NCBI GenBank assembly: GCA_964304625.1
Contig: OZ199840.1
Coordinates: 4,440,490 to 4,504,489, forward strand
Length of the DNA stretch: 64,000 bases
Reading direction: 5' to 3'
DNA from: Kudoa neothunni
Lineage: Eukaryota; Animalia; Cnidaria
Shown here: in pieces, positions 7,706-52,873 of the stretch
How the letters are laid out: each line of letters starts with the position of its first letter
Position numbering within the stretch: position 1 is the first letter of the stretch
The notes under the pieces: generated by a model
Databases searched by the model: none
Told to the model about the DNA's origin: nothing
The model's input: only the letters and a program-made list of their open reading frames with translations
Program-made: the position numbers and the translations under genes

Positions 7706-10700
7706 ATGAAGGTTCAACTGCTGTTCTATTTTTCTAGTATTAAATTACTTTTATATTATTTATTTAATCAATATTAGTCTTTATTAAAGTATTATTTGCA
7801 AATGCAAGACAGACACATCCAGTAGCACCTGCGCCAGAAGCTACATTAACGTACCAGATTGATTTTGAAGAAAATACCAAAAAATATACTTTTAAACATA
7901 AACTCGGGGGCACAAAGTATGTAGCTGGAAAAAAGTGTCGTATAATGATATCAAATGAGGCAACAACAATTGTCACATCATCGGTCGCAGCTGCTTTCGT
8001 GGAAATAGCAAGTTGCCCTGGGCATGATTCTAATCAATCTGATAAATGTATCATCGATTGTAATAGTGAAAATAGTAAAGTAGAGTACAGTAAACTTTCA
8101 CCGAGGACAAAATATATATATGTAAAAGTTGGGGATGGTACAACTGCTGTTCAAGGGAATGAGTATAAACAAGGTGGAAAAGTGTTTGGGTTGGCAACAC
8201 GTAATGGAATGGAAAAAATGTTAATTTATTAATGCATAAAATTTTAGCATTGATAGTAAATCCACAAGCAACAATATCTGTTGATAATGATAAAAAACTA
8301 AAGCTCGCCGCAAAAACTTGCATTCCTGTTGCTTGCCCCATCTTTTACAATGATGCAAAATTTAATGAGGGCACAAAGGTTGCAGGATGCGACACGGATA
8401 ACGCAGCTGGAGCTTTGGAATTTGACGTGCTGATTCCTCATTATGAGATGAGATGTGAGAATTATCCCAGTTTCTTTTACCATATGCCAAACACATACAT
8501 GAAGACCAACATGGAAATTTACAAACCTCAATATTACGTTACCAAAAAGACAGAGGATAGTAAGAAGTTATTAATTAAATTCACAGGTTCAATGCTATCA
8601 TCGGAAATATGTGTGTTCAGTATTAAAGATGGACAAACTGCAGGCAATGATCAACAATTTGAGTCTAAATGTGGTAATACAGCAGGAAAATGCTATGCAC
8701 TTTGCAAGAACACTGAACTTACGGTAACTGAAGCAAAAGTAATTTACAAAGTCCTAATTCAAACCAGACATCATGACCTCACAAAAACTGCTGCTGATTT
8801 AGAGGGATTTCCTCAGAACAAATTTGGTATTTATAGCGCGAATAATATAATGTTATAATAGTTGTCATGATTAAAGCGATTGCAGAGAATGGAGAAGGAT
8901 TACTTTCTGCATACACCAAACATGGTGTAACTTTTGACGGGAAATTCTTAAAGACGGATGGAACTGGAACTACTAAATTTAATACTTGTACGCTCAAACA
9001 TTATGCTGCCGACAAAATCAAAACTGCATCGACCAGTACGCAATGTAGCACTGAAACGCGCGTTACTGGCGGATCCAATAATTGCAATACAGATTGTTCA
9101 AAGGTGGTAATTGAAGGACTTGCTGAGGGAAAACCTTATATTATTGAAATTGTATCTTCCGGCATCAGTAGCCCAGAAAATTTTAAGGAACAAATACTTA
9201 TATGGACGGGTATATATTTAATAATCCTAGAGTTCTTGAGTTAATAATTTATAAAGAAAAAAAAGACAACACGAAAACTTTCCAAACAACAACATCCGCT
9301 AAAACGGAGTCAACAACCACTCTAACAGCTATTGGAGGACAAGGCGAAGGTGATAAGAAGGATGAACCCAACTGTGAGTATTACATAAGTCCAACAGGAA
9401 AAAATACGTTTTACGCTGCTACATGCACTGAAACAAACCCTTGTAGAGGAAGATGCAGAGAGTCAATAACCATTATTGACCTTGAGCCAAATACTTCCTA
9501 TGATATTAAAGTTGTTGCTGACAAAGACTACAAAGAGCATGTTTATACAAATGTTTCAACAGGTATGCTTCTCATGTGAATAATATATTATTTTTGATTA
9601 GATTTGGCAATCCTTACAATAACTCCAAAATATACCCAACAAGGTTTGGAGTTAAATGCACAATTATCAAAAAAAGTTCCAGAAGCCATTTGTCATTATA
9701 CAATTCAAGTCAAGAAAGCCGGCCAGTTCGAAAATGTTTATACATGCGAGAGGCCCGAGACCTCAGCAGTTGCCCCAACAGTCCCAGAGACTCTACCAAA
9801 CACACCAACTGGATCCGAACCTAGCATCAATCCAGCAAGAATGAGTGTCATTCCATCTCATAACCAACAAATGGAAAAAACAGGTTTAAAGCCTGCAAGA
9901 GCTGAGGTAACTCCAACTGATGACGCAGAAACAACAACTACTACTCCTGCTACCACAGCCGCCACGGTGGAAATTCCTCAAAGTTCGGACATATGCACGT
10001 CATTTCCATTATGCAGTTCGATTGTATTCAATGATTATGATGCAAAAGAAGAATATAAGGTATTGGTTACTGCAGTTGGAAAATCTTCACCCAGTGAAAT
10101 CACTTTAGTAGCCAGTAATTAATATTTTTTAGGATATAAATATTAATATCATTAAATAGCTGCTCCAAAAGAAAATCCAGCAGATAGGGAAAAAACAATA
10201 TTTATAACCATAACAAGGGATGGAGAAATATTCAATATAGAAAATACCCTTCCATCTAGTCTTTCTGAAAATTCGAAATGCAAATGGGAATTACGTAATT
10301 CCAGTGCCAAATCAATGGCCATAGTGAAAAAATGTATGAGTCCGAGTGACGTTGGATGCAGAAAGTTCCCAAAATGCAAATCTTTTAGAATAAGTGGGAT
10401 AAAAGATGGTAATAGTTATCATTTGACTGTTTACAGCTCCAGAGATTCTTCCATTTACGGGACGACTGTAATTGAACAAGGTATAACCTGGTTTATTTTG
10501 TAATATTGTAATTTACGAATCTTAGGTGCAAAGAGCAGCTCAAGGTTTGTTTAATTATTAAAAAATCAGTTAATCTATTATTTAGTTCTAAAACCCTTAT
10601 GATGTATGATTTGAAAAATAACACATGATTGAAATAAAATGATTTAGACTAATAGTGGTAGCGGTTGTTGGAGTTTTGATTGCCGGTGCAGTCGGCTTCA

Positions 10701-10723
10701 TGATTTTCAAGAAGAAAAACTAG
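7706..10723 (+). CDS. Surface protein family copy A: type I membrane protein, signal peptide + Cys-rich FN3-like modules + TM, ~870 aa
   Basis: Ten exons, all GT-AG and in frame: 7706-7736, 7778-8200, 8248-8826, 8877(or 8862)-9209, 9257-9562, 9602-10114, 10160-10480, 10526-10544, 10586-10603, 10648-10723. Starts with signal-like MKVQLLFYFSIFIKVLFANA. FN3-type E-F strand motifs: KLSPRTKY, IEGLAEGKPYIIEI, IDLEPNTSYDIKVVA, ISGIKDGNSYHLTV. C-terminal TM is ILIVVAVVGVLIAGAVGFMIF followed by KKKN*. Confidence 0.85.
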
Positions 10724-15560: not shown

Positions 15561-18107
<2,547 letters not shown>

Positions 18108-18460: not shown

Positions 18461-21445
18461 TAGTGGTTCCCAACCTGGGGTCCGTGGGAAGGGCTTGTGC
18501 CTTTAAGAAATTTTACACCCAGAAGTCGTTCTATCGTAAATTCCTATTTATAAGAAAAGCCGATCTCAAAAAATTCCCTTCGATATACAATTATACACAT
18601 ACAATTTTCAAAATTATTTAAGTTTAATACATATTATGTCTATTTTTATGATACATCATTTAATTTCTACTTGCGCTTATTTAAAAAACAAAACAATTTT
18701 ATCGCTTTAATGCTGTTAGTTACAAACAGCGTGTTGTTTGTTGCGTGTGCGATTCGTTTACGGACTTAGTTTGAAGTTAAAAGAAAAATTAGTCGTTAAC
18801 AATTTTGGATGGTTCGTTTTAATATCCATAATATTTTATGATTTTTTTCCGATGGTTTTAAAACATGAATTTTTATGCTTGCCATGAATTTTGTAATAAT
18901 TTTGTTTCGCTCTATTAAAACATAAAAATTATAAAATTAATTGAAGTTTTTATAGCATTTCTTTTTTACTTTAAAGAGAAAGAATGTATCAAACGGGGTT
19001 TACGTTAAAATATTGACAAATAAACCTCGAAAATCTATTACAAACGACGTGTCAGTTTAACATCCATATATACCTTTTTAAAATAAGTTAATTTATTTAA
19101 CGTTATAATTATTATTATTATAGACGATAACAATGAATTATCTAAAGAAGCGACAATATAACGAAAAATATATTTCATTTGGTTTTACATATATTACCAA
19201 AAAGGATGGCATACATAAACCACAATGTTTCTTTTGTGAATAAATTTCACTAAATACAAGTCCAAAACCGTCAAAACTAAAGGAAAATTTCAATTCAATC
19301 CACGCAGCTCTCATTAATTGTTCTATCGATGACCTTCACAAAAAAGGAATATTTTGATAATTCAAAACCATTAGATACTCTTGGATTTGTAAAGTCAACA
19401 AAACCATGTCTAGGAGCATCATATAAAATTACTTACGACGTAGCAAAACAAAAAAAGAGCACACAATTGCTGAAACATTGATAAAACCGTGTGCGCTGGA
19501 AATGATGGAGTTGGTCTGAAAAAAAAACAAAGGAAACTAATTGAAGCCATCCCTCTATCTAATAACAATTAAAAATAGAATAGTTGATATGTCTCAAAAC
19601 ATTTTGAATCAAGTGATCGCGGAATTACAGAACACTCCGTTTACGTAGAGTTTACAACTTAATGAATCCACCGATGTATCTCAGTGCAGCCAACTTATAG
19701 TTTTTGCCCCCTATGTTCACGAGAATAAACTCAAAAATGAGTTTTTATTTTGTCACCCAGTGATAAAAGAAGTAAAAGCCTCTGATATTTTTTATTTGTT
19801 GGATGATTTTTTTAAGAAACAAAACTTTGAGTGGACTAAGAAGTAATGTAGCATATGCACAGATGGTGCACTTGTTAAACAAAAAGTACCAAACCTTTTG
19901 GTAACACATTGTTTCCTTCATAGATATGCATTAGCTTCGAAAACTCCCTCATCGACATTAAAAGATTTTCTTGATATTGCAATGAAGGTGGTGAAGGAAA
20001 TTCAATCCAAGGCATCTAACTATCTACTTTTTAAAACTCTTTGTCAAGAAATGAACAAAGATTATGATGTGCTACTCTACCATACCGAAGTTCGTTGGTT
20101 ATATAAAGGTCAATACTTCAAACGATTATTTATTCTGAAAGATTAAGTTGCTATGTTTCTTAGAGAAAGAAATTATGATCTTTATAAATATTTTGACGAC
20201 AACATATTCATTTATGTAAGGGCATATCTCTCTGATATCTTTGAGCATATCAATAACTTAAATTTGTATATCTAGTGGAAAACGGTTACTTTGATTGACG
20301 CTTCTGAAAAATGCACTCTTTCACAGCAAAACTAACGCATTGGAAGAATAGTATTTTATCCGAAAATTATGTGAACTATGTGAACTTTCCACAATTTGAA
20401 GATTTGCTACAAACTGATGCCATTAAATTGCCAACATTAATGCCAGAAGAAATTTTAAACCACCTCACAATATTAAAATCCTCAGTTGAATGTTATTTTC
20501 CAACCACCAGAAATCTTCACCTTGATTCATGGATTCGAAATCCATTTATATATGACATCAGCACCATGGCCGACAACGATCCTTTGAAAAAACTGATTGA
20601 GCTGCAATCAATAAAAATCCTGCATCATGAAGTTAAACTAAAAAATGTTGTAGAATTTTGGTGTTTCACTAGAAAACTTTTCTCAAAACTCACAGAAAAG
20701 GCCTTAAAAAATAATACCTTTCACAACAACGTCCTTGTGCGAAGCTGGATTTTCCACACTGGTTCATATCAAACACAAATTCTGCAATAGACTAAATCCA
20801 GAACATAATATGCGAGTTTCTATTTCAAAAGCAATTCCTCATTTCGAATCACTCTTCGAAATTAAATAAAATCAAAATTCTCACTAATTGTAAGTTATAT
20901 TGTATAATATTAGTAAATCACTCATCCGTTTTAGTCATAAAGATGATGATATCGCGGAGTTCTTTAAAAATAAATACCATTTTTGTATATTAGAAATTTT
21001 AAAACATTAATTTATTTTGTTAGTAGCAAAGACTACGTTTTAATGAAAAACATTATTTTTTTCAATAGTTTCTTTTTTATTATTTTTGTTATTACTGTAA
21101 TTTTATTTCAACTAAGTTGTAAAATGTCGCTTCAGTATTAATCAAGACATGCATGTAGGTTCCTTATTCCTAAAATCGCTATTACATTTTAAATGCTAGA
21201 CGAAATAAAAATTGTATTTCAATATAATTACCTCAGGAACATTTTTAATAAAACTCGCTTTTAGTGAAAAATTTTTTTAAATAGAGCTAAAACTCGTAAA
21301 TGTATGTGAAAATTTAGCATATAAATTCATCTTTTTTAACAAAAATATTACTAGCAAACATTTACATGAAATGAAATGCTTGAGGTTCGTATTCGTTTGG
21401 CTTAGCTAATAGGGGGTACGCGTGTCAAAAAGGTTGGGACCACTG
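18461..21445 (+). mobile_element. Decayed hAT (Buster/Charlie, ZBED5/SCAND3-like) DNA transposon
   Basis: TIRs TAGTGGTTCCCAACCT (18461) and AGGTTGGGACCACTG (ends 21445). Fragmented transposase at ~19135-20885 with HTIAETLIKPCA, QLNESTDVSQCSQL, THCFLHRYALASK, LLYHTEVRWL, WIRNPF and CEAGFS motifs, plus stops and frameshifts. Confidence 0.9.
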
Positions 21446-23841: not shown

Positions 23842-25230
23842 ATGTTGGTATTTTCATTATTTCCTATTTTTATAACAATTGTTACAGCAGGTAATTCAAT
23901 CAATTTGTTATATATTTGTATATAATTATTTACTTTATCAAGAGAGAGCTTTACCTTCTTACGAAAAAGATGAAGGTCAAGCACCAGTTTGGTTGGCAAG
24001 TAAAGAGCTAAAAGATAAGGCTGCCGTCGAGAGATGGTATATTGACAAATCTGACGCCACATGCAAACCTTTCATTTATCTTGGATCTCTCGGAAATTTC
24101 AACAACTTTGTTTCAAGAGCTGCTTGCAACGAGCATCGTACATTGCGTTTAATTTATTTAAGCGTTTAATATTGAAATAGTAAAATTTAAACCAGAGGAA
24201 CAGGCAGATGCATGTGAGTTAGGCAAATCAGAAGGAGTTTGTGGCCTAACTGGCGATAAAATGCTGACAAGATGGTACTTTAGCAAAGATGCTGTTGACA
24301 GCAAGACGAACTCTTGCCACAGCTTCAAATACAACGGTTGTGGTGGAAACGCGAACAATTTCGAATCAAAAAAAGAATGTGAACAGGCTTGCCAAAGTAA
24401 TTCTCTCATTATTTCTTGTAGATTTTAAAATCAATAAAAATCATCCAACATATTTTTAAATTATATTGATAGATACCAAAAATGGCAAAATACCGGGATC
24501 ATTCGTCGCTTCCACAATGACAGCAACTCCAAATGAATTTGATTGCAAATTTGTACCTGAAGTAAAAACTGAGAGACCCAAAATGGGGATAATTCCTCAC
24601 AAAGATGGAAATAGATGTGTTTATGCTGCCGTTGGGACGGCTGCCAATAGGGGATTTTTTGACGATTTACCAACTTGTGTCAAGACTTGCATAAGTATAT
24701 AACTCAAAGTAGTAAATAATTTATTGATCTCAAATAGAAAAGACAGTTGCAGCCTGCAATGCTGAAGGTCCATACCAAGTTGTATCACAAGAAGCAGACA
24801 TAACTACGGGAGATGAATACTTCTATTTCAATAAAACTCTTGCATTATGTCTGCCCTTTTTGTCAAAGGCGCCAACTGAAAATACCCCCAAAATTGACGA
24901 TGGTACATTGAACATATTTAGCTCCGCTGAGCTATGTGCAAGTTTTTGTCCTGCAAGTATTAATTAATTTAGAATAAAACGCATAATATTAATTCAGCTG
25001 CTCATATTGGCCAATTAACTGCAGTTGAAGCTTGTAAACTGCCAAAAACTGGAGTGTCAGGTGATAATGATAAATACAAAATTGAGAGATTCTACTACAA
25101 TCATTCCGCAGAGGAGGGCAATAAATGCACATCGTTTAAATTTAATGGAAAAGACATGAACTTAAATAATTTCAAAGATAGTACTGCTTGCGAAAAAATT
25201 TGCAAGGAACCCATGTCAAACACAGGCTAA
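23842..25230 (+). CDS. Secreted protein with five Kunitz/BPTI-like domains
   Basis: Signal exon MLVFSLFPIFITIVTA, then five phase-1 exons each encoding one domain: ERWYIDKSDATCKPFIYLGSLGNFNNFVSRAAC; CELGKSEGVC..RWYF..CHSFKYNGCGGNANNFESKKECEQAC; CKFVP..RCVYAAVGTAANRGFFDDLPTCVKTC; YFYFNKTLALCLPF..NIFSSAELCASFC; CKLPK..ERFYYN..KCTSFKFNGKDMNLNNFKDSTACEKIC. Stop TAA at 25228-25230. Confidence 0.9.
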
Positions 25231-25791: not shown

Positions 25792-26980
25792 GCGGGTTTT
25801 ACATCCAAAACCGAACAGGGCGTTATTAAGCATAGGAAAGCGAGGAAACAAATAAATTTAAATACAAAAAAATGTCAAGAAATAATATTTCAGATGACTT
25901 AAGAAAACGCGCCATTAAGCTTGTGGTTGATGAAGGAAAATCTTTCTCCGTGGTAGCTCACGATCTAGGAATACCAAAATCTACCCTGCATGGCATGGTT
26001 AAAAGGTATTAAACATTCGAAACCTATACAAAAGGTGTAAGAGGAGGCCCAAGGGAAATTAAGATTATTGAGGAAGTCAAACGCCAACTTCTCCAGCTTA
26101 TTGAGTTCAACTGTACCATAACTTAACAGTCTATGATCCAAAAACTCAATTTGGATGTGATTCAAACAACCGTTTGGAGATGGATCAAAAAAATGAACAT
26201 ATTTAAAATGATAAGACAGATACCTCAAAGCCGCAATTCACCCGATGTAAAGCAAGAACGGAGAGAATACGCCAATTGTTACACAAACTTTCCAATAAAT
26301 GTACGGTATGAAAGGGTGATATTCGTCGATGAAAGCCCCTTTTCCTTCCATTTACTACGCTCTCATGGGCGCGTTCCTGTTAAAATAACTTCCAATCCAG
26401 TGGTGACTAACAGTAGAGGGCCGAACGTAACCATGATCCTGGCTGTCAGTGCTATCAGCGTAGTTTACTGTGAAGCCATTACCAGGGGCGTAAATTGCGA
26501 AATTTTTAAACAATTTTTAAACCAGTTAAAAAATGTGTTGGGCAATGGAGACCACATTATTGTCATGGATAACGTCAGATTCCATCATTCTAATATGGAA
26601 TTTTTTGACGACTATCCGTATGAGATAAAATATCTACCTCGATACTCGCCATTTTTTGAACCCTTTTGAGGTGGTATTTTCTCAAATTAAATCGAAAACT
26701 AGAAAAGATAGCCCTATCTGTGGACATATTGATTTAATACAGGGAATGACAACTTCCTCTCAATCTGTAATTGAGGAAAATTTAAAGAATTACTTTCAAC
26801 GTAGTGAAAGTTTTCTTAGATTGTGTCATACCTTACATGACATTCCTAGAAATTAAAAACTATTATAATCTTCATTAATTTTTATAAATTATATTTGAGT
26901 TTTTTTTTAATTTTAAATGCAGCATAAAATAAATTTTTGCTTAAGTATATACAGCGTCCGGTTTTGGATGTTAAACCCGG
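25792..26980 (+). mobile_element. IS630/Tc1-like (DDE_3) transposon, disrupted transposase
   Basis: TA-flanked TIRs (G)CGGGTTTTACATCCAAAACCGAAC and GTCCGGTTTTGGATGTTAAACCCGG. Motifs IFVDESPF, IIVMDNVRFH and YLPRYSPF-NPFEVVFSQIK, with frameshifts, at 25872-26856. Confidence 0.9.
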
Positions 26981-27641
26981 TAGAGGGTTAAAGATAAATT
27001 TTGTAATGTTACATTTAAACAAAATTATAAACTTCAATTATTACTAAAAAATTAAAATAATTATTTAAATATTTTTAAGAAATGGTAAAATAAATATGTA
27101 TGAATTTATATATATGTTATGATATTTTTCCATACCATCGAATAGATAATCAGTCGTCTCGGATCCAATCAGAGGGTTAAATAGCCCCAAAAATGTTTAA
27201 TGTTAGTGTAATTAAAAATAATTTGAGTAGAAGTCATTTTATTTGCAGGAATACACAAGAATGAAGGTTGTTGTGTTAGTGATTACAAATCCTCTTCGAT
27301 TCCATTAAACTAAAGTGTTTCATTTGTATACAATACGTATTCATTTATTTAACTGATTAATACACTAGGAGATATGAATGCATTAGTTTGTCTTTAATAC
27401 TTTGAATTGATTCATTGGTTTATAGTCTACGCGTACACTCATTAAGTTTAGAATTTCATCTCTAATTTTCCTGCGATACTCTTTACATAATATATTCCTA
27501 TTTTTATTTTCTAAATATTTTATTTGATATTTAATGATAAGGCCGGTTATATCCAGCGTATTGAACCGAATGAAATTTATTCGCGATTTACTTGGTGCTC
27601 ATTAATTCCGATAATAGATAATAACGAAGAATTAATATAAT

Positions 27642-30270: not shown

Positions 30271-30578
30271 ACATCTCACTTCATTCTACTGGAAAAAAAG
30301 TTATATTATTTCTTATAAAACGATGATTATTTTTCATACTTTCAGCAAAATTACTTGATTTTTATTTCAATAACCAATGTCTAGAATTTTTGTAGAAATT
30401 AAATATTTTACTTTTTTATGATGAACATATCTTAAAGTAGTATATTATTCTCCGGAAGTATATTTTATTACTAATACTACTATATCCCTATATTCGTATT
30501 GAAGCAAAAAATATCCTATTATTATTTTTTAAATACAAAATATTTGAATTATTTGTATAGAAGTACAAAATCTTAATA

Positions 30579-33023: not shown

Positions 33024-34341
33024 ACAGTCGAGATTGGATATTATGTAATTCCAAAATTTCGACGTTATTCTTTTTAGAGAGTGTTACGTTTCTTAAATGC
33101 GCTCACCCGACTACAGAATAACACACGCGGCCCGACTGAGTCCAATAAACTAATAATAATCAGGGCTTTTTAGCGAGGCGGATAGGCCGCCAATAATACG
33201 CAGTTATGGCTAATCCTTAACCGAGAGAAACCTTATTTTTGGTATTGTTATTATTTTATCATTTGTGAACATCATTAACATAAAAAATAAAAAAAATTTA
33301 ATTTATATGTAAATTCTCGTTATTGCGTGGTTTCAGTAACCAATCTATTTAAAAATATAAGTGTTTTTTTCATTATGTCCCGTTATAAACGTAATAAATA
33401 GGAGAAAAGAGATATCATTGATTGTTACAGTTCGATAAAAATATTGTAAGTCGTCGAAAAGGTGACAATTTCTAAGTATAAATTGAATGATATGGTTATC
33501 TATGTTGAATATTAATACATTGTCACGTTTAAGGTTATTTAAAAATTGATAGAATTCTTTCACACGAATATAAATTCAAAAATAAGGATATCGAAACTAA
33601 AAGGAGGACATATTTTTCGGGAAAATTTAAAATATAGATTGTGAGCTGTATGATTGGCTCGTTAAACAATATTCGAATGATAATGTTCCGCTGAGATATG
33701 TTATTGTCGAAATTGTTCTATATATTGCAAATAAAAAAGAAATTTCCATTTTAAAGTCTGGTTAAGGTGGTTTTCAGAGTCCACGTCAAAATATGGGATA
33801 ACTTTCGAAATGTTTTATGATGAGATTGTGAGTACAGATATTTCATCTGTTGACTCATGGACTGTTGGAAACATTAATTTGTTTGAAGCATATAGTCCTA
33901 AAGACATTATGAACATTGATGAAATTTCCTTTCTTCTATGAACAGTTATAAAACATTAGTTATGATTTAAGGGATGAAGTCCGAATATAAAGCGAAAAAT
34001 ATCCAAAAAAGTGAATATTTCACTGTTACTCTTTTTTGAATAGGGGTAAACTTCCATCAGTTTCTACTGGTAAATTTTAGGATCCTAGACGTTACAACTA
34101 ATTTAAACATTACCGCGTGAATATTATTCAAAAAACACACGGACGATGTGTAGTAGATTTATTAACGTAATTAGAAAATTGAATCAAAGAATGATAGATG
34201 AGAACAGAAAAGTTTTAATTTTTTTGGATCAATATCCTTTTTATTCCAAAAATATTGATTTTCTTAAAATATCGAAATTCTTTTCCTACAAAAAAAACCA
34301 CTAATACCCTTCAAACCTTAATTCACGCATCATCAAATCCA
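33024..34341 (+). mobile_element. Truncated Tigger/pogo remnant (copy 1)
   Basis: Begins TA|CAGTCGAGATTGGATATT. Decayed DDE_1 coding (YSPKDIMNIDE, RKVLIFLDQ). 33300-34340 is an inverted copy of ~47995-49050. It is cut at the TTAA of the next element. Confidence 0.75.
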
Positions 34342-34345
34342 TTAA

Positions 34346-36508: not shown

Positions 36509-39148
36509 TTAATTCTTGGATTTACTTGCCACAAAGGCCACTCCACCAATAACCACACCCAAAGCACCTAACGCCGCGAGGATACTAAATAAAAATTTTA
36601 TGCAATTTTCTATTATATTAACATATTATAATTACATCCACCAGTTCTTTTTCATCCAACCACTATATATAAAATAAATAGTAAAAATTCGTAATTTATA
36701 TAATAATTATTTTTACCCAGTTCCTTGTCCTAAAAAATATATATTACAAAATATAAATAGTACTTAATAAATTACTTCCAATTTCAATTTCTTCAATAAG
36801 GGCTGCAGCTTGTCCATCACCTGACGATAACTGATACCTGTAATTTATATCTATATTGTTGAAGACAACCGAATTGGCACAATCAATATCATCATCAGTT
36901 GATTTTCCAATTTTCTCAAACAAGAATTTGTCCTTTGGATTCGCGGGATCGACTGCGTAGATCACAACGTCACATAAATTCCCTGGTTGATTTTTGTTTG
37001 GTATGATTGTTAATCTTTTTTCATTAGTGTCAAATGTTATTTCTGGTTTTACTTTATTATCACTTGGTCCTAAAATTCTGTGTTTTAATGTTCTTAAATC
37101 AATGTTTATTCACTTATTAGTTGCGACACTTGATAAACTGTATGATTAGTGTGACCAGCATGAACCAACTCGATACTTAGGGTCATATTAACGGGTAAAT
37201 TTATCACTTTAAATCTTTGAGAACACAAACCCCAACATGTTTTTCCATTCGAACAAGTTGCTATTATTTTTCGAGATTTTCTGCGCATTCCATATCTCAC
37301 GTAGCATTTCATTTTTGGGAGATAAGACTCATATTCACTGCCTGTTCTCGGGGTCATAATCATTGTGTCACCAAAAAACAGGGCTTGAGTTTCATCAAAT
37401 TTAATTGGAGCTAATGAGATTTAGTATTATAATATATAAATATGTATATACTCGTAGCAAAGAATTTATTAACAGCATATTCTGGAGTTTCGGAGTTTGT
37501 TCCTATGTTCATTTGAAGTATATATGCTGTGTTGGGAATTAGAAGCTTTAAGGTTATTTTTTCTCCGCATTCAGCAGTACATGCTTCGTTTCTTCCGTCT
37601 CCGCATATTTTACTCATTGGAATACCCGGAAGTCTCGCGTGTACCAATGATGGATAACATTTATGAGAATCTTCAGGATTAGTAACTTGATAACTAGCTG
37701 AGGTTGTTGTAATATCAGATATAGTAACGGTATTTTTCCCGGCTACATTGTATTATTTTTTATTTATTTAGTTATTAAGAATATACCTTTAATTTTATAT
37801 TCTTTTTCTCCATGTCTAGTAGCAATTCGGACAGTATATTCAGTAGCAGCTTGACTTTGGTCAGTCAATTCTAGAGTGGTAGCTCCACCACAGTATTTGT
37901 AGCATTTATCATCGGCGATTTTAATTTCACTACATTTATCCTTATAATCACCAGTACTACCTTTTATTTGGAAATTGCAGATTTCATAGCCCATGTAAGG
38001 ATTTTGCACTTCTAAGGGGAAGTTCGCTGTTGTACCTGATTGAGTAACGGTGAAAGGAACATATTTAAATTTGTTATCTTTATTATAGAAAGATTTATTG
38101 GCATAGAACACGACTTTAGCTTGAGTGGCACCACAGTAAGAATAATAGGCACTCGATATTGAGTAACGAATTGGTACAGTGATATTACATGCAGAACAAT
38201 TGTTATTTTCCACCTTGACCAAAGTTGTATCTTGGTTAGTGCTTTTAACTCGGCATTTGTAGTTGTCCGTGCAGAAGTTGTTAACACTAAATTGAGCTTC
38301 TTCTTCACTAAGTGTAACATTAGTTTCAGGAAGTCTGGGCATATCTATCAAAAAATAAGTTAAAAAATTTAGTATTATTATTATTTACCGGCTGGAACTG
38401 CTAGTATGTTAATGTTGATTCCTTCAGTAATTCTGAAATAATGCATCAACCTTCCACTATTAACTTTTATCACAACCTTCTCGTTACATTTAGGTTCGCA
38501 TACAGATTCATTTTCTGCGTCAGCTATTGTGCACATAGTTTCATTGAATTTGGCTTTAACTCCATCTCTAACCAAATGTTCTATTTTGCACTTATCGGCT
38601 TCTTCTCCCTTCAAATGAATTGTGACTTCATCCATATATTTTGAGATTTCTTGATCAACTATAGGTATATCTTTTGGATCTATTGTGGTTTCAATAGGGG
38701 CGGCAGTGGTAGTAGATTCTGTACTCTCGGTTGATGGGTCGGAATCAGTAGAAGGGTCACTAATACTCTCCGTCTCAATATCAGTGTCAGTCTTAGTACC
38801 ATCAGTATTAGTCTCAGGTTCAGGCTCATCAACTTCAGCTTCACCACCACCACCAGCAGCAGCAGCAGTATCACCATCGACATCACTAACAACTTTATCA
38901 CCTTCAGTGGATTTCATCAATATCAAGGGTATATTTGACATTAAAGTGTTGCTCTGAATAGCATTAGGTTGTTGTTCTGCTCCTGGTTGGTTTACTACTA
39001 CTACTGGTACAGGAGGTCGTTTGATTTGTTTAATAAAATACTTGTGACAACATACTAAATATGAGTAAAATAATTAAAGGAAGATTAAACATAACAATTT
39101 ACTCGTTGTGAGAATAGTTGAAAATAGAAACCAAAATGGCAACCTCAT
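36509..39148 (-). CDS. Surface protein family copy C (apparently intact)
   Basis: Same nine-exon structure as copy B on the minus strand. ATG at 39148 (MRLPFWFLFSTILTT). Ends ..GGVAFVASKSKN*. No disruption was seen in the reading frames. Confidence 0.88.
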
Positions 39149-41215: not shown

Positions 41216-41299
41216 TAGGTCAGCAGCGTTATACAAATACAAATGTGTAAACGACAACAGATAATTACTACTATTGATAATAACTTCGCGCTCATGTGT

Positions 41300-44200
41300 G
41301 CGTATCAGACAATGCCCGTTCGATCGTGTTCGTGTCCTCTTTTAGTTACACTATGTCAGGCTGGAGTGTAGAAAGTGTTGAAGAGGCTTTGAAAACTAGC
41401 AGACTTTTCTCTTGGAAAAAATCTACAACGCGTTCTAAAGAATGGGACAGTTTCTGTTCCATCTTTACTAAAAACGGGGATGAAACATCCCAAATTGATT
41501 TTATTGTTTGCACAAAGTTCAACAAAGCATTCCCGCATAAGTCGTCTTACGGGAATAGGAAGCTTATTAGTCATAATAAGTTACATGCTAAAACAAATAT
41601 AAAAATTAATGAATTATTTGTTTCACCTCCCTCCATTGTTAATTTAAGCCTATCAGATCAGGTAATGTTTGACACTAAAATTGCTAATTTTGTAGCTGAA
41701 ACAATCTCCCCGTTTACAATAACAGAAAGTGCATCGTTTACGGAGAGGATAAACTTCGCATTTAACTTAGGCAAAAAGGTCAATGAACCTAGTGCTAGAC
41801 TTAAGATTTTATCCAAAAAATGTGTTAAAAAAATAATCATGAATGAGTATGAGCGCATATATTTAAAAATGTAAAAATTAATTGCAACAATAAGTCACAA
41901 TAGTATGTGCCTAACCATTGATATTTGGACTGATAATGTCAAAACCAACTCATTCATTGATATATTAGTGTTGTTTGTTAAAAATTTCTCCCTTCAACAT
42001 TTCCAATACGACATGATCTATTTTCCTGTAAAACACACTGCCGAAAATATAAATAAAATCTGCACGGAATTTTGTATTAAATTTTCACTTAGCAAATCTG
42101 ATCTAAGAATTGTTTGTGACTCCGCAGCAAACAACCTATCTGGTCTAAGAGAGTTCAACACAACCAAATGTGCTGCTCACCGCCTTCACACTATTATATC
42201 TCAAGGTATTTTATGTATTAAGTTTATGTTAAAATTTTGATGAGTAAATAATTGTAAAAGTGATATACTTAACGATATGCTATCTTGATCTCTCATAATT
42301 CTGTTTGGAAAATCAAGATAAAACTGTTATAATCTAAATTTAAATAGTTTATATTTATGTATTTTAATATATTGATTGCACTTTTTTATCACTAAGTTTA
42401 TAAATAAATTTTACTTTCGCTATAATATCTAATTTCGATTTTTTTATTATGTGTAGCTTGGGATCTTAGTACAAACAGCACATCCGATTTATCCATACTA
42501 AGGGTGAATGTTGACAAACTGTGCGGATCTGTTCATAAAACGGCGGATTTACAGTCAAAATTACCAATGAAAATACAATGGGGCTCAGCTACGCGACCAT
42601 GGAGAGGCCTCAGCGATCGATATAGGACGTTAGTGGCGTGTTTCGATAGTTTGGAGGATGTGCTAAAAAATCATCCAGCTAAAAAATACTTTGACGGATT
42701 GGACAAGAAAGAATGCGTTGTTGTAGCTGAATTTTTCAAAATATTTTCCGATTTCTTTGATCAGTTGGAGCAGGTGAAAAGGCCATCGTCACATTTTGTA
42801 ATTCGTTTAAGTTTCGTTTTTTATATTATCGTTAGGTGTTTATTGTATTTCATCGTATCAAAGCAATGATTCAAAAACAACGTGAAACTTTTATGGGCGA
42901 TTATTGTATGCATTTGGAAAGTTTATTGGACGAAAAATACACACAATGTATTGATATCAACCATAAAATCGCAGCTTTTCTCCATCCAAATTTTAAAAAA
43001 TTCAAATTTATTGAGTGTAAGTCTGCAAAATAAAGAATTAAATTTTGTGATAAATCACGTTGAGTCGCTTTTGTCTGGCATGGCTGAACCAAATTACCTA
43101 TATAAAAAAAAACAAATTTGATGGTAAATCTTTTCCTGTAACAAATATTTAAAAAAATTAGAATTAATCCCAAAGAGCTCGGAACTTCTGAAAACCCACT
43201 CAATATGTTATGAACTGGATAGTGCCTCAGAAGATTTTCAATCAGAAATTCAACTGTACATCCGAGAAAAAGTCAACCAAGTTTACGAAAATCCGCTCGT
43301 TTATTGGGAAAACTTCAAGAATGAAAATCTTAAAAAATTGCAACTAACATGTACAGCCGACCAGCATCCAGCTCAATGTCAGAACGGGCGTTTTCATACG
43401 CTGGAAAAATTTTATCCAAGTCTAGATATAGACTTGAACCGAACACATTAAGAAAATTAGTAGTTTATACTAATAATATTAAAAATAAGACACTTCTGGA
43501 GTGAATTTAATTCACTCCTTCTCTTTATTATGTTTTATTTTGCATTATCTCAAAAGAAAACTGAACAGACCTAACTTAGCCACTTCAAAAATTCACTTCT
43601 AACTATTAGACTTATAAAATTAGGGTTTGAAAGTATTTTTATCATTCTAAAAAATGTTTAGGCAGATTTGACTATAGCGGAACTTAATATAACGAGGTTC
43701 TGTTTCCTAAATTAATTTGATTATCTTTTAAAAAAAACTGATATCAAATTTGTATTTGGTAATAAAATATGAAATTGTGACATGAGGTAACATATCTCAA
43801 AAATTCCAGTAAATCAAGGTAAAGATCGTAATTGCTTACATTCAATGCCTCATATTTTTCTTCGCTTAAAATTTAATAGTAATTTCATATCTAAGATCTT
43901 TTTGGTAATGGTAAAGTATGCGCCACCTAAAAACGCCCGCTTGTGCATGTTATTCGAATATCTTTTTTTCAACAAACATTGAATTGTTGTCTAATTCGTT
44001 TTGATAATCACTCATAAGTTGGTTATTCTTCATATTTTTTAGCATATAAACATAAATTATACAATATCAGATTTATTTATACATGTTTTTATTAGTTTTA
44101 ATTACGAATAGTTCAAAAACGAGGACAACTACGTACTCTCAAAATGCATTTTCTTAATATTCTTAGTACTGATGAGTTTTTTAAAAATAAATAAATAAAT

Positions 44201-45031: not shown

Positions 45032-45244
45032 ACCATGCCAATTTGATCAGACAACAGATTTCAGGTGCGTAATAACCATGAACTTCTATTTTTCCCAACG
45101 AAAAAAATATTTCTTAATTCTATAATCATATTAGTCGACGCATTTTACTCTTATTTCAGGATTTATATCTGATGTTACTTCGAATATTTTGAATTTTCGA
45201 CACTATTTCTAAAAGTGCGCGATAACCATGCGCCACTGTATATA

Positions 45245-48200
45245 CAGTGGGTGAAGGGTAATACGTAATCCCTATGGGACCGGAGGAAAAGGGCAGATTA
45301 TCCATCATTGTTGGGCAATCAGCACCTTTTTGGTGCGCGCATTAAAAAAACAAATTATTCTCCTATAGAGATATTATTTGATCTCCGTTAAAAAAAAATT
45401 GTAATTTTAGTTTGTTTGATTTTTTGCTGAGATCGCAAAAATTTCTTCCTCGGTTATATGTAGGTATTTACATACATTAGAATAACTTTTTGTAAAATAA
45501 CCTTCAAGGTATTCGATGAATTTGAAAGCTTCTTCTGAACTATAAGATTCTTCATGGTTTTTCACGCAATCAGATTCAGATGATTTTTCCATCATATTTG
45601 GAGTATTAACGCTTTTATTGTCATAATTTCAATCAAATTCGCAGACTCTAATGAAATTTTCTTCACTTATAGATTCGAGGAAATCAGAGCAATTATCTTC
45701 ATCCGATGTGACCAAAGATTCCTCTATACTTTCTTTCATTTCTTAATGGTATTTGTTTAATAAAAACTTTACGTTGGTCAATTTACCACCAATTTCGGAA
45801 ATAAATCCTGCTTTTTTTAAAACAGTTAGATATAGTTTGTCTTGTTATATCCTCTCAGGGTTCTTTAATCAACACTAATGCATCTAGAATATTCAAGGGT
45901 TTCAATTAAAAAGTTGATCCTTGTATCAGATGTCTTTTGTAAATGGACTTAAATGAGATAATAACATCGTAATCCATGGGTTGTAATACTAAAGCAGCGT
46001 TTCTGGGGGAAAAATTAATTCGATATTGGATAACTCTAGCGGTGGATGACAATTAGCATTATCAAGAAATATTAATATTTTCTTGTTTTGTTTTTTAAGG
46101 TTGTTATTTAATTTGGTTAAATAATTGATAAATATATCAGAACTCATCTAGGCTTTTTTGTTTGAATAATATGTGACTGGTATTTGCGTTAGGTTTTCAA
46201 AACATCTTGGATAAGCATAACAACCAATTACAACGGGTTCAAGTTTTTCACCTAACATTGAGGAACCTAATAAAAGTGTGACTCTTTTTTTGACCGTATA
46301 GAGCATTTAACAATTGTCTCGTTAGAAAGAACATAAATTCTTCCTAAATAATAAATTTAACAAAATAATATATTCCGATTGAATTAAGTTTCATTAATCA
46401 TACTTGGCTGCGGCTGATAACATAAAGCTGTCTCATCTAGATTATAAAATTGCTCAACTTTATAATTCTTCAAGGGTTTTTTCAACCGCGAGTTCCATTC
46501 ATCAATAGTTTTTGTTTCAACAATGTTCCCTTCTCCGTGAAAGTTTAATCTGAGTAAATTGAACCGCCCTTTGAAACCACGGAACCAATCGTAGCTAACA
46601 TCTTCATCGTCTTTATTAATTCCTTTTTGTATTTCATTTCGTTTGGCAATTATTTACACTGAAGAAAGCTCAACATTTTTTGTTCTCATCCAAGAAATCC
46701 ACTCATATACCTGCTGATTTATTTCCTTTTTTAACCTTCTTTTAATCTTACAGGACTTTTTTGCCACTCCACTTTCAACAGCTTGTTTAATCTTAGCTTT
46801 CTTTGATAATATACTATTTAATGTTGATAAAGATTTAAAAATGAAATGTTTAACAGTCTGTCTTTTTGCACCCTGAGGTTGTTGATTCTCAAAATACTTC
46901 AATATGTCATATTTTTCATCCGGTGGACGCCATTGATGTATGAGATTTTTTTCCAGTCATGTTATTGAGCAGGCTAAAATCGGCGCGCATCTTTGAGGCG
47001 ACAGCGCAGAAAAAGATGCCGATTGTCCATCAATGGACCATAATTGCGTTTTTATAAGATACTTTAACAAAATAAATATTTCTAAATATACTTTAAGCCT
47101 TAATTATTACATCAGTATAAATAGATAAGAAAAATCAACTCAAAATAGGCGTAACTTACGCGGAAGATAAAAAGTGCGGATTAGTCATACATTCGAGATT
47201 GTATATTGCGTGGTTTTTTGCTAGTCCCAAAAAACCACGCAATAAAAAGTTTTCACGCAATATCCAGTTTTGTGCGTGCGCATCACATTGTAAAATACGA
47301 TTTTCTTGTACTTATGTTTGATGACTATTCCTACAAATAAACACAGTTAAAACACAACTAACATAGAGTTCAATTAAGGAAGAGTTATTAAATTTTGTCA
47401 AAAAATCTTGTGGTTATTGTGGGTCGAAATCTTTCAATTGATATTTTTTTTATTCTTTTTTAAATTCTGTACGTTTTGAGATATAAATCAAATAATCCAG
47501 ATGGAGATTCTTGAATTAAAATTTTCACTAAAATGTTAACGCTATTTTTTATTTATTTTATTAAAATTTTGACTTCTTTAATAATTGGTTCGACATCATC
47601 AGATTAACCATTGTGGGCAATAAGTTGGCATGATTTTGATTCTCACATGTTGCAACATTACCATCGTCAAATATACTTTCGTAAACGTCGAATTAATTTA
47701 AAAAGATTCATTATATATACATAAAATACTACCTTGTGAACTGTTTCTGAGTCTGGATATCTTACTTAAATCTTCTTGTTTTATAAACTGATATAACTTT
47801 TTTATTAAAGTTTTATATACTACTGCCAAACATTTTTGATTTTTAAAACAATTAAATATAATTGTTGGTATAATACTCTCCCAAAGTTTAGTTAATGGCG
47901 TGATTGAATTTAGTAATGTTTATTTTTCGATGATAAAAGCTTCACATAAAACCGTGTGCTTAGTCAGTGTATCCCTGCCTTACTTTTTAATGCATTTGAT
48001 GATGCTTAAATTAAGGTTTGTAGAATATTAGTTGTTTTTTGGTGGGGAAAAAAATTAATATTTTTAGGATGAAAAGGATATTGATCCAACAAAATTAAAA
48101 CTTTCCTGTTCTCATCTATAATTCTTGGGTTCAACTTTCTCGTTATGTTTATAAATATGCTACACATCATACATGTGTGTTTTTGAATAATATTCACGCG

Positions 48201-49179
48201 GTAGATGTTTAACTTGGTTGACACGTCTAGGATTCTGAAATTTACCAGTAGAAACTGACGGAAGTTCACCCTTATTTAAAAAGGAGCGACAGTAAAATAT
48301 TCACTATTTTTTGGATATTTTTCGCCTCATATTCCGACTTCATCCTTTAAAACATAACTAATGTTTTGTAACTGCTCACAAAAGAAGGAAAGTTTCATCA
48401 ATGTTTATAGCGCCTTTAGGACTATATGCCTTAACCAAATTAATGTTTTCAACAATTCATGAGTCAACAGATAAAATATCTGTATTCGCGGCCTCTCCAT
48501 GAAACATTTTGAAAGCTATCCCATATTTTGACGTGGACTCTGAAAACCACCCTTAATTAGACTTTAAATTTGAAATTTCTTTTCATTTACAATATATAGA
48601 ACAATTTCGATAACTGCATATCTCAGCAAAACATTATCATTCCACCATTGTTTAACGAGCCAATCATATAGCTCACCATTTATATTTTTAGTTTTTCCGA
48701 AAAATGTGTCCTCCTTTTAGTATAAATATCCGTATTTTGAAGTTATCTTCGTGTGAACGAATACTATCAGTTTTTAAATGATCTTAAACGTGACAATGTA
48801 TTAATATTCAACATAGGTCACCATATCATTCAATGTAAACTTAGAAATTGTCATTTTTTCGACAACTTTAAATATTTTTATCGAATTATAATAATCAATG
48901 ATTCATTTTTTCTCTCAAGTATTACATTTTTAACGGGACGTAATGAAAACGCTTCTATTTTTAAATTGTCGGATTACTAAAACTACTCAATAACGAGACT
49001 ATATATATAAAATTTTTATTTTTTAATGTTAATAATGTTCACAAAACAATAAAATACTAACAATAACAAAAAACTATATTTCTCCCTAAAAAGAATAACT
49101 TCGAAATTTTGTGATTACGCAATATCCAGTCACGCAGTATCCAATCTCGACTGTACTGCCGATTATCCGTCACCCACTG
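45245..49179 (-). mobile_element. Tigger/pogo (CENP-B-like) transposon with a nested second Tigger
   Basis: TA-flanked TIRs CAGTGGGTGAAGGGTAAT and ATTATCCGTCACCCACTG. Minus-strand remnant at ~46960-45407 with VYEWISWMR, SYDWFRGFKGRF, FYNLDETAL, IFLDNANCHPP and LQPMD. Confidence 0.8.
47190..49153 (-). mobile_element. Tigger/pogo remnant (copy 2, both ends present) inserted at a TA near the end of the previous element
   Basis: TA|CATTCGAGATTGTATATTGCGTG ... CACGCAGTATCCAATCTCGACTG|TA. Homologous to 33024-34341. Confidence 0.78.
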
Positions 49180-50223
49180 TAGTAGCAGGGCATCCAACGA
49201 TACCATCGGAAAAACCCAGGGTAGAACTCTTAAAAAACCAAGGTCGCAAAGAGAATACAATAGTATTATTAAAATAACAAAAATTTTTATTTTAAACGTG
49301 TTTTCTAATTACTGTCGTCAACTGAATCGTCTTCACAACCCTCAGTTAAGAAGCTTGATCTATCTTTCAAACCCTCAAGGTATCGTTGGCTCACAACACC
49401 GCTGTTCACATAATGTATTAGTTCATTTGTTGGATGCGACATCAAACATATTATTATTTCTTCTGATCAACTGCTTTGCGATTAGTTTAAATTTTACAAT
49501 TTCAGCCTTTAATGAGTTAGTTTGTTTAGTTTTTACTGTGTTCATTAATCAATAAATTCGTGGAACTTTTACAGTAGCTGGAATTTCTGACCTAAGCATA
49601 TTGATCAAGCCATTATTCAAAACCTACTTTTAACCAATCTTGATTGGAGCACATATTATCCTACGCTCTTTTTTTAAGCTCCTTTTGAAATTTCACACAT
49701 ACTTTAAAATAATATACGTCAATAGCTTCAAAATATGTTATTAAAAAACTAGAAAATTTGAATGCGGCGTTGAAATATCCAAATACAATCACAGAATAAT
49801 AAGAACAATTGATTAAATAACAATTGTCCAGGGGTTGGAAAACAGCGCGTTGTCGACAACCGTGATATCTTTTTAAAATTTCGAATAATTTTAATTCTCT
49901 CCGTTATTAAAACAATAAATATGATTATTCTACCTAATTCTAAAATTTACTGTTTATAAAATGGTCTCAAAGAATCCAATAAATTAAAAGTATTGCAAAT
50001 AAATAAAAAGGCCCGAGGTTTGGACGCGCTGTGTAGTAGATTTATGGCGCGTGTGCATTTAGCAGATTCCGGCGAAGGTTCGCCGTATGACTTAATTCCT
50101 ACAAAAATTCTAGACATTGGTTATTGAAATAAAAATAAAGTGAATTTATTGTAATTGTGAAAAATAACCATCGTTTTATAAGAAATAATATAACTTTTTT
50201 CCTAGTAGAAGGAGGTGAGATGT

Positions 50224-52873
50224 TTAATTCTTGGATTTACTTGCCACAAAGGCCACTCCACCAATAACCACACCCAAAGCACCTAACGCCGCGAGGATAC
50301 TAAATAAAAATTTTATGCAATTTTCTATTATATTAACATATTATAATTACATCCACCAGTTCTTTTTCATCCAACCACTATATATAAAATAAATAGTAAA
50401 AATTCGTAATTTATATAATAATTATTTTTACCCAGTTCCTTGTCCTAAAAAATATATATTACAAAATATAAATAGTACTTAATAAATTACTTCCAATTTC
50501 AATTTCTTCAATAAGGGCTGCAGTTTGTCCATCACCTGACGATAACTGATACCTGTAATTTATATCTATATTGTCGAAGACAACCGAATTGGCACAATCA
50601 ATATCATCATCAGTTGATTTTCCAATTTTCTCAAACAAGAATTTGTCCTTTGGATTCGCGGGATCGACTGCGTAGATCACAACGTCACATAAATTCCCTG
50701 GTTGATTTTTGTTTGGTATGATTGTTAATCTTTTTTCATTAGTGTCAAATGTTATTTCTGGTTTTACTTTATTATCACTTGGTCCTAAAATTCTGTGTTT
50801 TAATGTTCTTAAATCAATTTTTACTCACTTATTAGTTGCGACACTTGATAAACTGTATGATTAGTGTGACCAGCATGAACCAACTCGATACTTAGGGTTA
50901 TATTAACAGGCAAATTTATCACTTTAAATCTTTGAGAACACAAACCCCAACATGGTTTTCCATTCGAACAAGTTGCTATTATTTTTCGAGATTTTCTGCG
51001 CATTTCATATCTCACGTAGCATTTCATTTTTGGGAGATAAGACTCATATTCACTCGCTGTTCTTGGGGTCATAATCATTGTGTTACCAAAAAACAAGGCT
51101 TGTGTTCCATCGAATTTAATTGGAGCTAATGAGATTTAGTATTTATAATATATAAATATATATGTACTTGTTGAAAAAAATTTATTAACAACGTGATCTG
51201 CAGTATTTAAACTAGTTCCTATCTTCATTTCAAGTATATATGGTGTGTTAGGAGTTAGTAGTTTTAATGTCGTTTTTGTGGCACATACATCAGTGCATTT
51301 TTCGTTTCTTCCGTCTCCACATATATCGCTCATTGGAATACCTGGAAATTTCGCGTGTACCAAGGACGGATAACATTTAGAAGAATCAGTATTAGTAACT
51401 TGATAACTAGCTGAGGTTGTTGTAATATCAGATATGGCAACAGTATTTTTCCCGGCTATATTATATTAGTTTTTATTTATTTACTGAAAATATACTTTTA
51501 ATTTGATATTCTTTTTCTCCATGCCTAGTGGAAATTTGCACAGTATAAGAATCTGCAGCAGCAGCTTGTCCCGTCAATTCTAGAGTAGTAGGTCCACCAC
51601 AGTATTTGTAGCATTTTTCGGTACCAGTTCCAGTCTGACTACATTTATCTATATAATCATTTATGCTGCCACCCTTTATTTTGAAATTGCAGATTTCATA
51701 GTCCATGTAAGGATTTTGCACTTCCAAGGGGAAATTGACATGTGTAGTACTTGATTGTGATACTGTGAATGGAACATATTTAAATTTGTTATCTTTATTA
51801 TAGAAAGATTTGTTGGCATAGAACATGATTTTTGCTTGAGTGGCACCACAGTAAGAATAATAGGCACTCGATATTGAGTAACGAATTGGTACAGTGATAT
51901 TATATGCAGAACAATTGTTATTTTCCACCTTGACCAAGGTTGTATCTTGGTTAGTGCTTTTAACTCGGCATTTGTAGTTGTCCGTGCAGAAATTGTTAAC
52001 ACTGAATTGAGCTTCTTCTTCACTAAGTGTAACATTAGTTTCAGGAAGTCTTGGCATATCTATCAACAAATAAGCTAAACAATTAATTCTTATTATTTAC
52101 CGGCTGGAACTGCTAGTATGTTAAATGTTGATTCCTTCAGTAATTCTGAAATAATGCATCAACCTTCCACTATTAACTTTTATCACAACCTTCTCGTTAC
52201 ATTTAGGTTCGCATATGACTTCTTCCTCGCCAGTAGCTATTTTGCATAAAGTTTCATTGAATTTTGCTCTAACTCCATCTCTAACCAAATGTTCTATTTT
52301 GCATTTATCGCTTTCTTCTCCCGTCAGGTGAATTGTGATTTCGTCCATGTACTTTGAGATTTCTTGATCAACTATAGGTATATCTTTTGGATCTATTGTG
52401 GTTTCAATAGGGGCGGCAGTGGTAGTAGATTCTGTACTCTCGGTTGATGGGTTGGAATCAGTAGAAGGGTCACTAATACTCTCCGTCTCAGTACCATTTC
52501 CACTCTCAGCATCACCATCATCATCATCAACAGCACCACCATCAATATCGGTTTCAGTGCTAGCAGCAGCATCAGGGTCGACACCTTCAGCAACAACACC
52601 AGCACCGGGACTTATAACACCATTGTTACCATCGTCAACGGATTTCATCAGTATCAAGGGAATATTTGACTGTAAAATGTTGCTTTGATGAACAATAGTT
52701 TCTTTTTCTTTCTCTTCTGGTATTGGTACCACAATTACAGGTCGTTCGATTTGTTTGATAAAATACTTATGACAACATACTAAATATGAATAAAAGAATT
52801 AAAGGAAGATAAAAAGTAATAATTTACTTGTTGTGAGAATAGTTGAAAATAGAAACCAAAATGGCAACCTCAT
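50224..52873 (-). pseudogene. Surface protein family copy D, with a +1 frameshift at the end of exon 2 (pseudogene/silent copy or sequencing error)
   Basis: Same nine-exon layout. At 52123-52125 it reads gttAAAtgttg where copy C reads gttAAtgttg, giving ..EGINI* instead of ..EGININILAVPA. The other exons and splice sites look intact. Confidence 0.75.

Follow-up and report, generated by a model that had tools for sequence, protein, structure and literature searches.

Four spliced genes (A, B, C and D) lie in a stretch of 64,000 nucleotides (nt) of the cnidarian Kudoa neothunni (GenBank assembly GCA_964304625.1, contig OZ199840.1, positions 4,440,490 to 4,504,489 of the forward strand; hereafter the window). 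They probably belong to a lineage-specific superfamily of Kudoa genes for type I membrane glycoproteins, which would act as a coat or adhesin with a host-facing variable patch. The evidence comes from the exon plan shared by all four genes, the fibronectin type III (FN3) fold of one module, the number of intact copies in the genome and a cassette which differs in every copy compared.

Gene models and shared exon plan

The window is AT-rich eukaryotic DNA (about 30% GC) with short GT..AG introns. Start codons were read at 7706 (A, forward strand), 27642 (B, forward), 39148 (C, reverse) and 52873 (D, reverse), and a tblastn scan with all modules found exactly four members within the window. The plan is common to A, B, C and D: a hydrophobic signal exon is followed by phase-1 module exons, two microexons and a transmembrane (TM) exon. 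The module exons, which are in phase 1 in all cases as read in A and B, encode about 100 amino acids (aa) each, one of them about 190 aa, and are separated by GT..AG introns of 40-54 nt. The TM exon is exactly 76 nt long in both A and B and encodes a hydrophobic helix with a basic tail of 4-6 residues (KKKN in A, TSKSKN in B). Modules of about 100 aa carry four Cys, with the exception of B e6, the last B module, which has two. Models and frames of A were read from the sequence and the exons of B by hand, and all searches and folds described below were run exon by exon, not on joined spliced proteins. The features, in window positions, are:

7706-10723, forward strand: gene A, A-type, about 865 aa
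7706-7736, forward: A signal exon e1
7778-8200, 8248-8826 and 8862-9209, forward: A module exons e2, e3 (double module) and e4
9257-9562, 9602-10114 and 10160-10480, forward: A module exons e5 (the folded four-Cys FN3-like module), e6 and e7
10526-10544 (19 nt) and 10586-10603 (18 nt), forward: A microexons, conserved in paralogues
10648-10723 (76 nt), forward: A TM exon
27275-27641, forward: upstream region duplicated with B, C and D, 82-91% nt identity
27642-30270, forward: gene B, B-type, about 745 aa
27642-27687, forward: B signal exon e1
27736-28392, forward: B e2, acidic low-complexity tip and module M1
28432-28992, forward: B e3, domain X and module M2
28734-28991, forward: variable cassette of B (module M2, second half of e3)
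29038-29328, 29371-29667 and 29711-30004, forward: B e4 (M3), e5 (M4) and e6 (M5)
30050-30062 (13 nt) and 30117-30143 (27 nt), forward: B microexons
30195-30270 (76 nt), forward: B TM exon
36509-39148, reverse strand: gene C, B-type paralogue
about 38704-38387, 38342-37791, 37740-37453, 37408-37115 and 37067-36777, reverse: C module exons
36584-36509, reverse: C TM exon
50224-52873, reverse: gene D, B-type paralogue

The microexons are the smallest parts of these models. In seven paralogues of A the two microexons are the sole conserved islands in the last introns, and their AG/GT borders and reading frame are kept across all seven. In B the second microexon (27 nt, in phase 2 on both sides) supplies a juxtamembrane motif rich in Trp and Lys, GWMKKNWW. 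Skipping this exon would keep the frame, which makes it a possible alternative-splicing switch. All four proteins are predicted to be single-pass with type I topology, and a cytoplasmic tail of 4-6 aa would leave the protein itself no means of signalling. The four-gene plan with its 76-nt TM exon and the single-pass topology without a signalling tail had already been proposed in an initial annotation of this DNA, and our reading agrees with both.

The A exon 5 module as a divergent FN3 domain

The sequence of A exon 5 follows the pattern EPxC..Y.vS, A.C, PCRG.C and then LEPNT.YDIKV. An AlphaFold2 model of this module, built on a 41-row alignment, reached a predicted local distance difference test score (pLDDT) of 78.6 and a predicted template modelling score (pTM) of 0.72. 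Foldseek matches of the model were at the top nearly all FN3 domains (E 3e-3 to 1e-2, template modelling scores 0.5-0.63), and alignment with VIA gave Z-scores up to 9.5 with a root-mean-square deviation of 2.5-3.6 over 83-94 residues. An unbiased VIA search against 48,161 representative PDB chains returned FN3 domains at all of the top 50 ranks (Z 9.1 at rank 1 and 7.8 at rank 50), those of IFNGR and IFNAR1 being among the matches.

Sequence comparison leads to the same fold. Alignment A1, which joins A exon 5, its paralogues and the B-type exon 5, has four Cys and one Leu as invariant positions, and no Trp is invariant in it: the B-strand region carries an invariant Cys instead. The A1 profile matched almost only FN3 domains among PDB sequences, through the LxPxTxY region, and the conserved LEPNT.YDIKV is the part which aligns to titin, fibronectin and tenascin. 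Pfam found nothing above threshold in the ten A and B module exons searched, with fn3 appearing only below threshold and in A exon 5 alone (E 0.008, 16.9 bits against the gathering cut-off of 25). Such sub-threshold fn3 matches (E<=0.1) are present in 29 of the 41 family members, with a best E of 8.7e-6. With FN3 indicated by the structural comparisons as well as by the sequence matches, A exon 5 encodes, as modelled, a divergent FN3 domain with four invariant Cys and no invariant Trp. The four Cys of a module would form two disulfides. The initial annotation had described the modules as FN3-like with extra Cys and without the invariant Trp, which is borne out for the fold of A exon 5 and for alignment A1. 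It had also proposed that each module be folded with AlphaFold and searched with Foldseek; A exon 5 gave the FN3 sandwich, while the double-module exon 3 of B folded poorly.

For domain X a different family was considered, since a language model proposed ZP-N/cuticlin-N (PF23344, PF25057) with a score of 0.84, below the 0.9 line. This candidate was rejected: none of the 39 members of alignment A2 (the double-module exon) matched Pfam at E<=1, and the PDB profile search was empty. ZP-N was also absent from the top 50 folds of the folded A exon 5 module.

Homology and duplication of the four genes

Compared exon by exon, the B, C and D proteins are 64-97% identical, while A and B share only about 20% identity. 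The relationship between the two types is visible in their profiles. Alignment A2 has 16 invariant columns, and hhalign joined positionally equivalent A and B module pairs with probabilities of 96% (E 4.6e-9; e3C) and 91% (E 1.2e-6; e5). Together with the invariant Cys pattern of A1, this shows that the homology of A with B, C and D claimed at the outset is real, despite the low identity.

The duplication unit of B, C and D is about 3.1 kb long (27275-30400 at B) and includes about 370 nt upstream of the gene, a region which presumably holds the promoter. Identity varies along the unit in a mosaic way. Between C and D it reaches 99-100% from exon 6 through the TM exon to the 3' end, and in the introns there as well, but falls to about 50-75% around the acidic N-terminus and to 72-80% over exon 4 and the latter half of exon 3. 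No terminal inverted repeats were found flanking the unit, and explaining it as a mobile cassette was rejected on that ground. The initial annotation had itself raised the chance that B, C and D are uncollapsed haplotigs of a single locus. This is ruled out, because all three lie on the same chromosome scaffold, in both orientations and with unrelated flanks.

Family size and distribution in the genome

We searched the whole genome of 40.26 Mb, consisting of three chromosomes (17.15, 12.04 and 11.05 Mb) and an 18.2-kb contig. With the 192-aa A exon all 150 scored matches had E<=4e-49, among 494 first-look candidates, and stops were present in only two of these 150 best copies (about 98% intact). 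The A exon 5 module likewise gave 150 scored matches among 538 candidates. The A-type count is therefore a lower bound of at least 150 full-length exon copies, with about 500 candidates. B-type exons are present in about 15-20 copies, some of them broken. Each of the three chromosomes carries copies, often grouped in dense tandem arrays, of which several are located near chromosome ends. What had been annotated as a four-member family is thus a superfamily whose size is at least 150 genes and may be about 500, some two orders of magnitude above the four first counted. Its small B-type subfamily includes B, C and D, the A-type being far larger.

B-type pseudogenes with frameshifts or stops were observed at L004 (C3:4508001-4511294), L015 and L016/L017. 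The first of these is situated about 5 kb past the window end, beside the intact copy L003.

Selection and the variable cassette

The ratio of nonsynonymous to synonymous divergence (dN/dS) was 0.09-0.39 in all 13 module sets, at dS of about 0.5-1.35. All module sets are under purifying selection, and at such high dS these ratios indicate that the copies are old and have been maintained as coding genes.

Elsewhere in the genome some B-type genes occur as tandem twins whose sequences, introns as well as exons, show about 100% identity over about 2.5 kb. The exception is a patch of 300-500 nt with only 66-88% identity, which takes in M2 (the second half of exon 3) together with the start of exon 4. 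In one twin pair domain X has no differences in 288 nt while M2 has 53 in 270 (Fisher p 1e-18), and over the twins this contrast ranged from p 1e-11 to 1e-18. In B the cassette is M2 itself; in other copies the variable patch extends into the first half of exon 4. The M2 cassettes of all 13 copies compared are unique, with at most 85% nt identity, and a search for donors found no M2 cassette shared between any of the 13.

A first dN/dS estimate of 1.34, which would have suggested positive selection, was discarded as circular because the columns had been picked for variability. When loops were instead defined from predicted strands, the framework gave 0.06-0.19 and the M2 loops 0.32 overall, with loop values of 0.5-1.05 and about 0.9-1.05 in two loops. 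Loop ratios of at most about 1 are in accordance with relaxed or diversifying evolution but do not prove positive selection. Most simply read, the framework has undergone concerted evolution and old copy-specific cassettes were retained; recent point-mutational selection fits the pattern less well. A copy-specific cassette fits selection that maintains diversity, and roles in recognition or adhesion fit it equally well.

Proposed function and alternative explanations

From these results a model can be put forward in which each protein would consist of a signal peptide, a rod of five to seven beta-sandwich modules of about 100 aa, a short Trp/Lys-rich juxtamembrane stretch encoded by the two microexons, a single TM helix and the basic tail of 4-6 aa. 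Duplication, both in tandem and to dispersed sites, has brought the family to hundreds of intact copies. Within subfamilies the framework is homogenised, introns included, probably by gene conversion, whereas the acidic tip at the N-terminus and, in the B type, M2 and the beginning of M3 differ in every copy. The proteins may form a coat or adhesin layer on the plasma membrane of the parasite, where the membrane-distal variable patch would meet host ligands and/or antibodies and the conserved base would serve only anchoring and packing. Selection may keep the cassettes diverse.

Several observations weigh against this model. The confidently predicted fold is limited to one module type: AlphaFold2 of the B double-module exon 3 (39 rows) reached a pLDDT of only 48, with 14 predicted strands, and this exon has no Pfam or PDB sequence match, so that the FN3 nature of domain X and M2 is suggested by four-Cys spacing and predicted strands. 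Outside the two module pairs named above hhalign detected no relationship, which applies to most module types. In the cassette dS is as high as dN, with synonymous divergence of 0.33-0.62, and positive selection need not be invoked if the variability stems from relaxed constraint and old divergence. Expression, splicing and surface location are predicted from genomic sequence, and the proteins could also be located in internal membranes or spore structures.

The same data were weighed against other explanations. One is antigenic variation, the candidate variant surface-antigen system of the initial annotation, in which one or few members would be expressed per parasite and switching or cassette exchange would evade fish antibodies. 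The repertoire is large and arranged in dense arrays, several of them near chromosome ends, each copy has a unique cassette inside a homogenised framework, the membrane-distal tip is variable while the base is conserved, and the presumed promoter region is duplicated along with the gene. Signs of such variation have been reported in myxozoans, and subtelomeric contingency genes in Sphaerospora molnari (bioRxiv 10.64898/2026.02.11.705288). On the other hand, a comparison of 13 copies found no cassette that had passed from one locus to another, dN/dS in the loops does not exceed about 1 (0.09-0.39 overall), and copies are found along chromosome arms and are not confined to subtelomeres. Kudoa plasmodia, moreover, grow inside muscle fibres, where antibody pressure is low, and on balance we consider antigenic variation unlikely from the genomic data. 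There is a correspondingly small chance that the family is a programmed substrate for antigenic variation or recognition diversity, with unique exchangeable cassettes (the M2/M3 loops and the acidic tip), restricted expression and segmental conversion. If true, animal parasites would for the first time provide an example of such a system, and it would supply the chief element still lacking from an account of how myxozoans persist in immunocompetent fish. The second explanation is recognition or adhesion between the parasites themselves, in cell-in-cell stages, in sporoplasm fusion or as self/non-self recognition between co-infecting clones, similar to the Alr system. Kudoa is a cnidarian, its tandem Ig-like/FN3-like domains, one of them hypervariable, and its clustered paralogues resemble Hydractinia Alr (in architecture only), and copy-specific cassettes would suit a recognition code. 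Against this, hundreds of copies far exceed known allorecognition families, and Alr proteins have long cytoplasmic tails with signalling motifs in place of the 4-6 residues present here. A role in recognition or adhesion between parasites seems quite improbable. Hydractinia Alr genes have been cited also in speculation on a non-self-recognition role of the S. molnari immunoglobulin superfamily (IgSF) genes (PMC11792419).

It could finally be argued that the copies are non-functional repeats, i.e. decaying fragments spread by transposons (for example as Pack-MULE cargo), assembly artefacts or haplotigs. The region is rich in transposases (Tc1-like, piggyBac-like, MULE and hAT-like), the published assembly has 45.6% repeats at about 7x coverage (PMC12239612), and some copies are pseudogenes (L004, L015, L016/L017). 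This explanation is largely refuted and we regard it as highly improbable: about 98% of the 150 best copies of the 192-aa A exon have no stop, dN/dS is 0.09-0.39 at dS about 1, and splice phases, microexons and the 76-nt TM exon are kept between subfamilies at about 20% identity. Terminal inverted repeats are absent around the unit, and B, C and D, which share a scaffold, are not all in the same orientation and are flanked by unrelated sequence.

Comparison with known systems

The preferred reading, a coat or adhesin family with a variable patch, can be compared with several known systems. With FN3 (PF00041, E-set clan) the modules share the seven-strand sandwich of about 100 aa, the LxPxTxY motif at the E-F turn and F strand, and the arrangement in tandem arrays of type I membrane proteins with one module per phase-1 exon; the FN3 domains of class I and II cytokine receptors likewise carry conserved disulfides. 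The Kudoa module differs in its four invariant Cys, in having no invariant Trp and in remaining below the Pfam threshold, and most Kudoa module types are not recognisable by sequence.

The cestode oncosphere antigens EG95, 45W and TSOL18, also parasite surface proteins and members of small multigene families, have a similar gene plan: the signal exon is followed by a single FN3 exon or a pair of them, and a hydrophobic C-terminal anchor has an exon of its own. Compared by description only, they differ in that they contain no more than two FN3 domains, of the classical kind, and have fewer than about 10 genes, in lacking the four-Cys pattern, variable cassette and microexons, and in belonging to a different phylum. 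Variant-specific surface proteins (VSPs) of Giardia and Spironucleus are also type I proteins with a very short, basic and conserved cytoplasmic tail. Their repertoires reach about a hundred genes in diplomonads, 18 VSP-like genes being reported in S. molnari, and a role in immune evasion has been proposed for them. They have more than 10% Cys, CXXC/CXC repeats, a CRGKA-like tail and a different fold, whereas the Kudoa proteins have about 3-4% Cys, C-x3-C spacing, FN3-like modules and the tails KKKN and TSKSKN. With four Cys per about 100 aa, that spacing and such tails, A-D were rejected as members of the Giardia-type VSPs.

Hydractinia Alr proteins are the cnidarian case: clustered type I proteins with tandem beta-sandwich domains which are missed by sequence profiles, one domain being hypervariable. 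They differ, again as compared by description only, in their Ig-like domains, long signalling tails and tens of genes. The apicomplexan SRS (SAG1-related) and 6-Cys families are similar as large surface families of disulfide-stapled beta-sandwich modules, but they are anchored by glycosylphosphatidylinositol, have a different fold family and are found in unrelated organisms.

Genomic surroundings

Transposase remnants surround all four genes (19847-20787, 26127-26666 and 41284-43448, forward; 55289-56982 and 59471-61974, reverse), and the transposon-rich setting described in the initial annotation is thus evident here as well. A Tc1/mariner-like DDE_3 is found directly upstream of B, piggyBac-like DDE_Tnp_1_7 and MULE are also present, and hAT-like open reading frames (ORFs) were recognised by eye only, with no Pfam match. 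Housekeeping genes are interspersed between the family members, namely an adaptin N-terminal region (2521-3282, forward, E 4e-22) and an AMPK/SNF1-like protein kinase (15734-18104, forward, E 1e-25). Neighbouring ORFs at 23876-25227 (forward) contain at least two Kunitz/BPTI domains (Pfam E 4e-10 and 5e-10) and are probably one gene for a secreted multi-Kunitz inhibitor. An inverted pair of related ORFs is located at 33348-34301, between B and C, and at 48009-48977, between C and D, with 64-71% aa identity over three ORFs; this repeated element or gene may belong to a more extensive inverted duplication that takes in B, C and D.

Elsewhere in the assembly, about 89 tandem TAAACC units are present at the end of chromosome 2 (12039536-12040069) and at no other chromosome end, and a non-canonical (TAAACC)n telomere at one chromosome end was reported for this species (PMC12239612). 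Nematode SL1, nematode cuticle collagen and arthropod cuticle protein were looked for in the genome and were absent. The mitochondrial contig (18,219 bases, 44% GC) has very divergent cox1 (2629-4005, reverse) and cob (7805-8830, forward) genes and reads TGA as Trp. ARAGORN detected no tRNA in it and there was no Rfam match, and about 10-16 kb of the contig is without a convincing ORF.

Range beyond Kudoa and significance

A profile search of 1.84 billion representative proteins returned 146 matches and no named homologue. The four-Cys pattern was seen kept only in short unnamed ORFs from ENA and Logan metagenome contigs, while the long matches inspected were repeat proteins of an ordinary kind, most of them with FN3 repeats that had been picked up by way of the E-F strand motif. 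A search for homologous proteins with the 192-aa A exon gave no match. Four contigs of related organisms from metagenome and Logan data were compared (GC 21-38%). Three of them, two of ENA ERZ28624939 and one of Logan SRR31175926, carry several A-type exons in the order of gene A at 27-49% aa identity, which indicates that the gene plan is older than the species; the fourth (Logan SRR33849685) has only two weak A-type matches. The Logan SRR31175926 contig also holds an intronless ORF of 979 aa with a weak match to NopRA1.

The K. neothunni genome was published by Weber, Paulini and Blaxter in 2025 as a 40.2-Mb assembly (N50 12.0 Mb) from about 7x coverage, comprising a circular mitochondrial genome in addition to three chromosome scaffolds. 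GC content is 30.41%, introns have a median length of 49 bp, repeats make up 45.6%, and 5,316 proteins were predicted from protein hints only; surface proteins, gene families and fibronectin are not mentioned (PMC12239612). Candidate variant-surface families of the VSP-like, RIFIN/STEVOR-like and ETRAMP-like kind are described for S. molnari (bioRxiv 10.64898/2026.02.11.705288), and the A-D family is neither among them nor among the IgSF genes of that species (PMC11792419). With no named homologue and no description in the literature searched, the earlier view of a lineage-specific family not previously described still stands.

If there are at least 150 to about 500 intact genes, they would equal 3-9% of the 5,316 gene count and probably be the largest family in the genome, and they may be counted among the 45.6% "repeats" of the published assembly. 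The family offers a clean natural example of a homogenised framework in which copy-specific cassettes are retained, and illustrates how FN3 can drift, with the Trp lost, two putative disulfides gained and the fold kept. Myxozoans are economically important parasites of fish whose immune evasion and interaction with host cells are largely unknown, and these genes are concrete candidates for surface antigens, diagnostics and vaccine targets.

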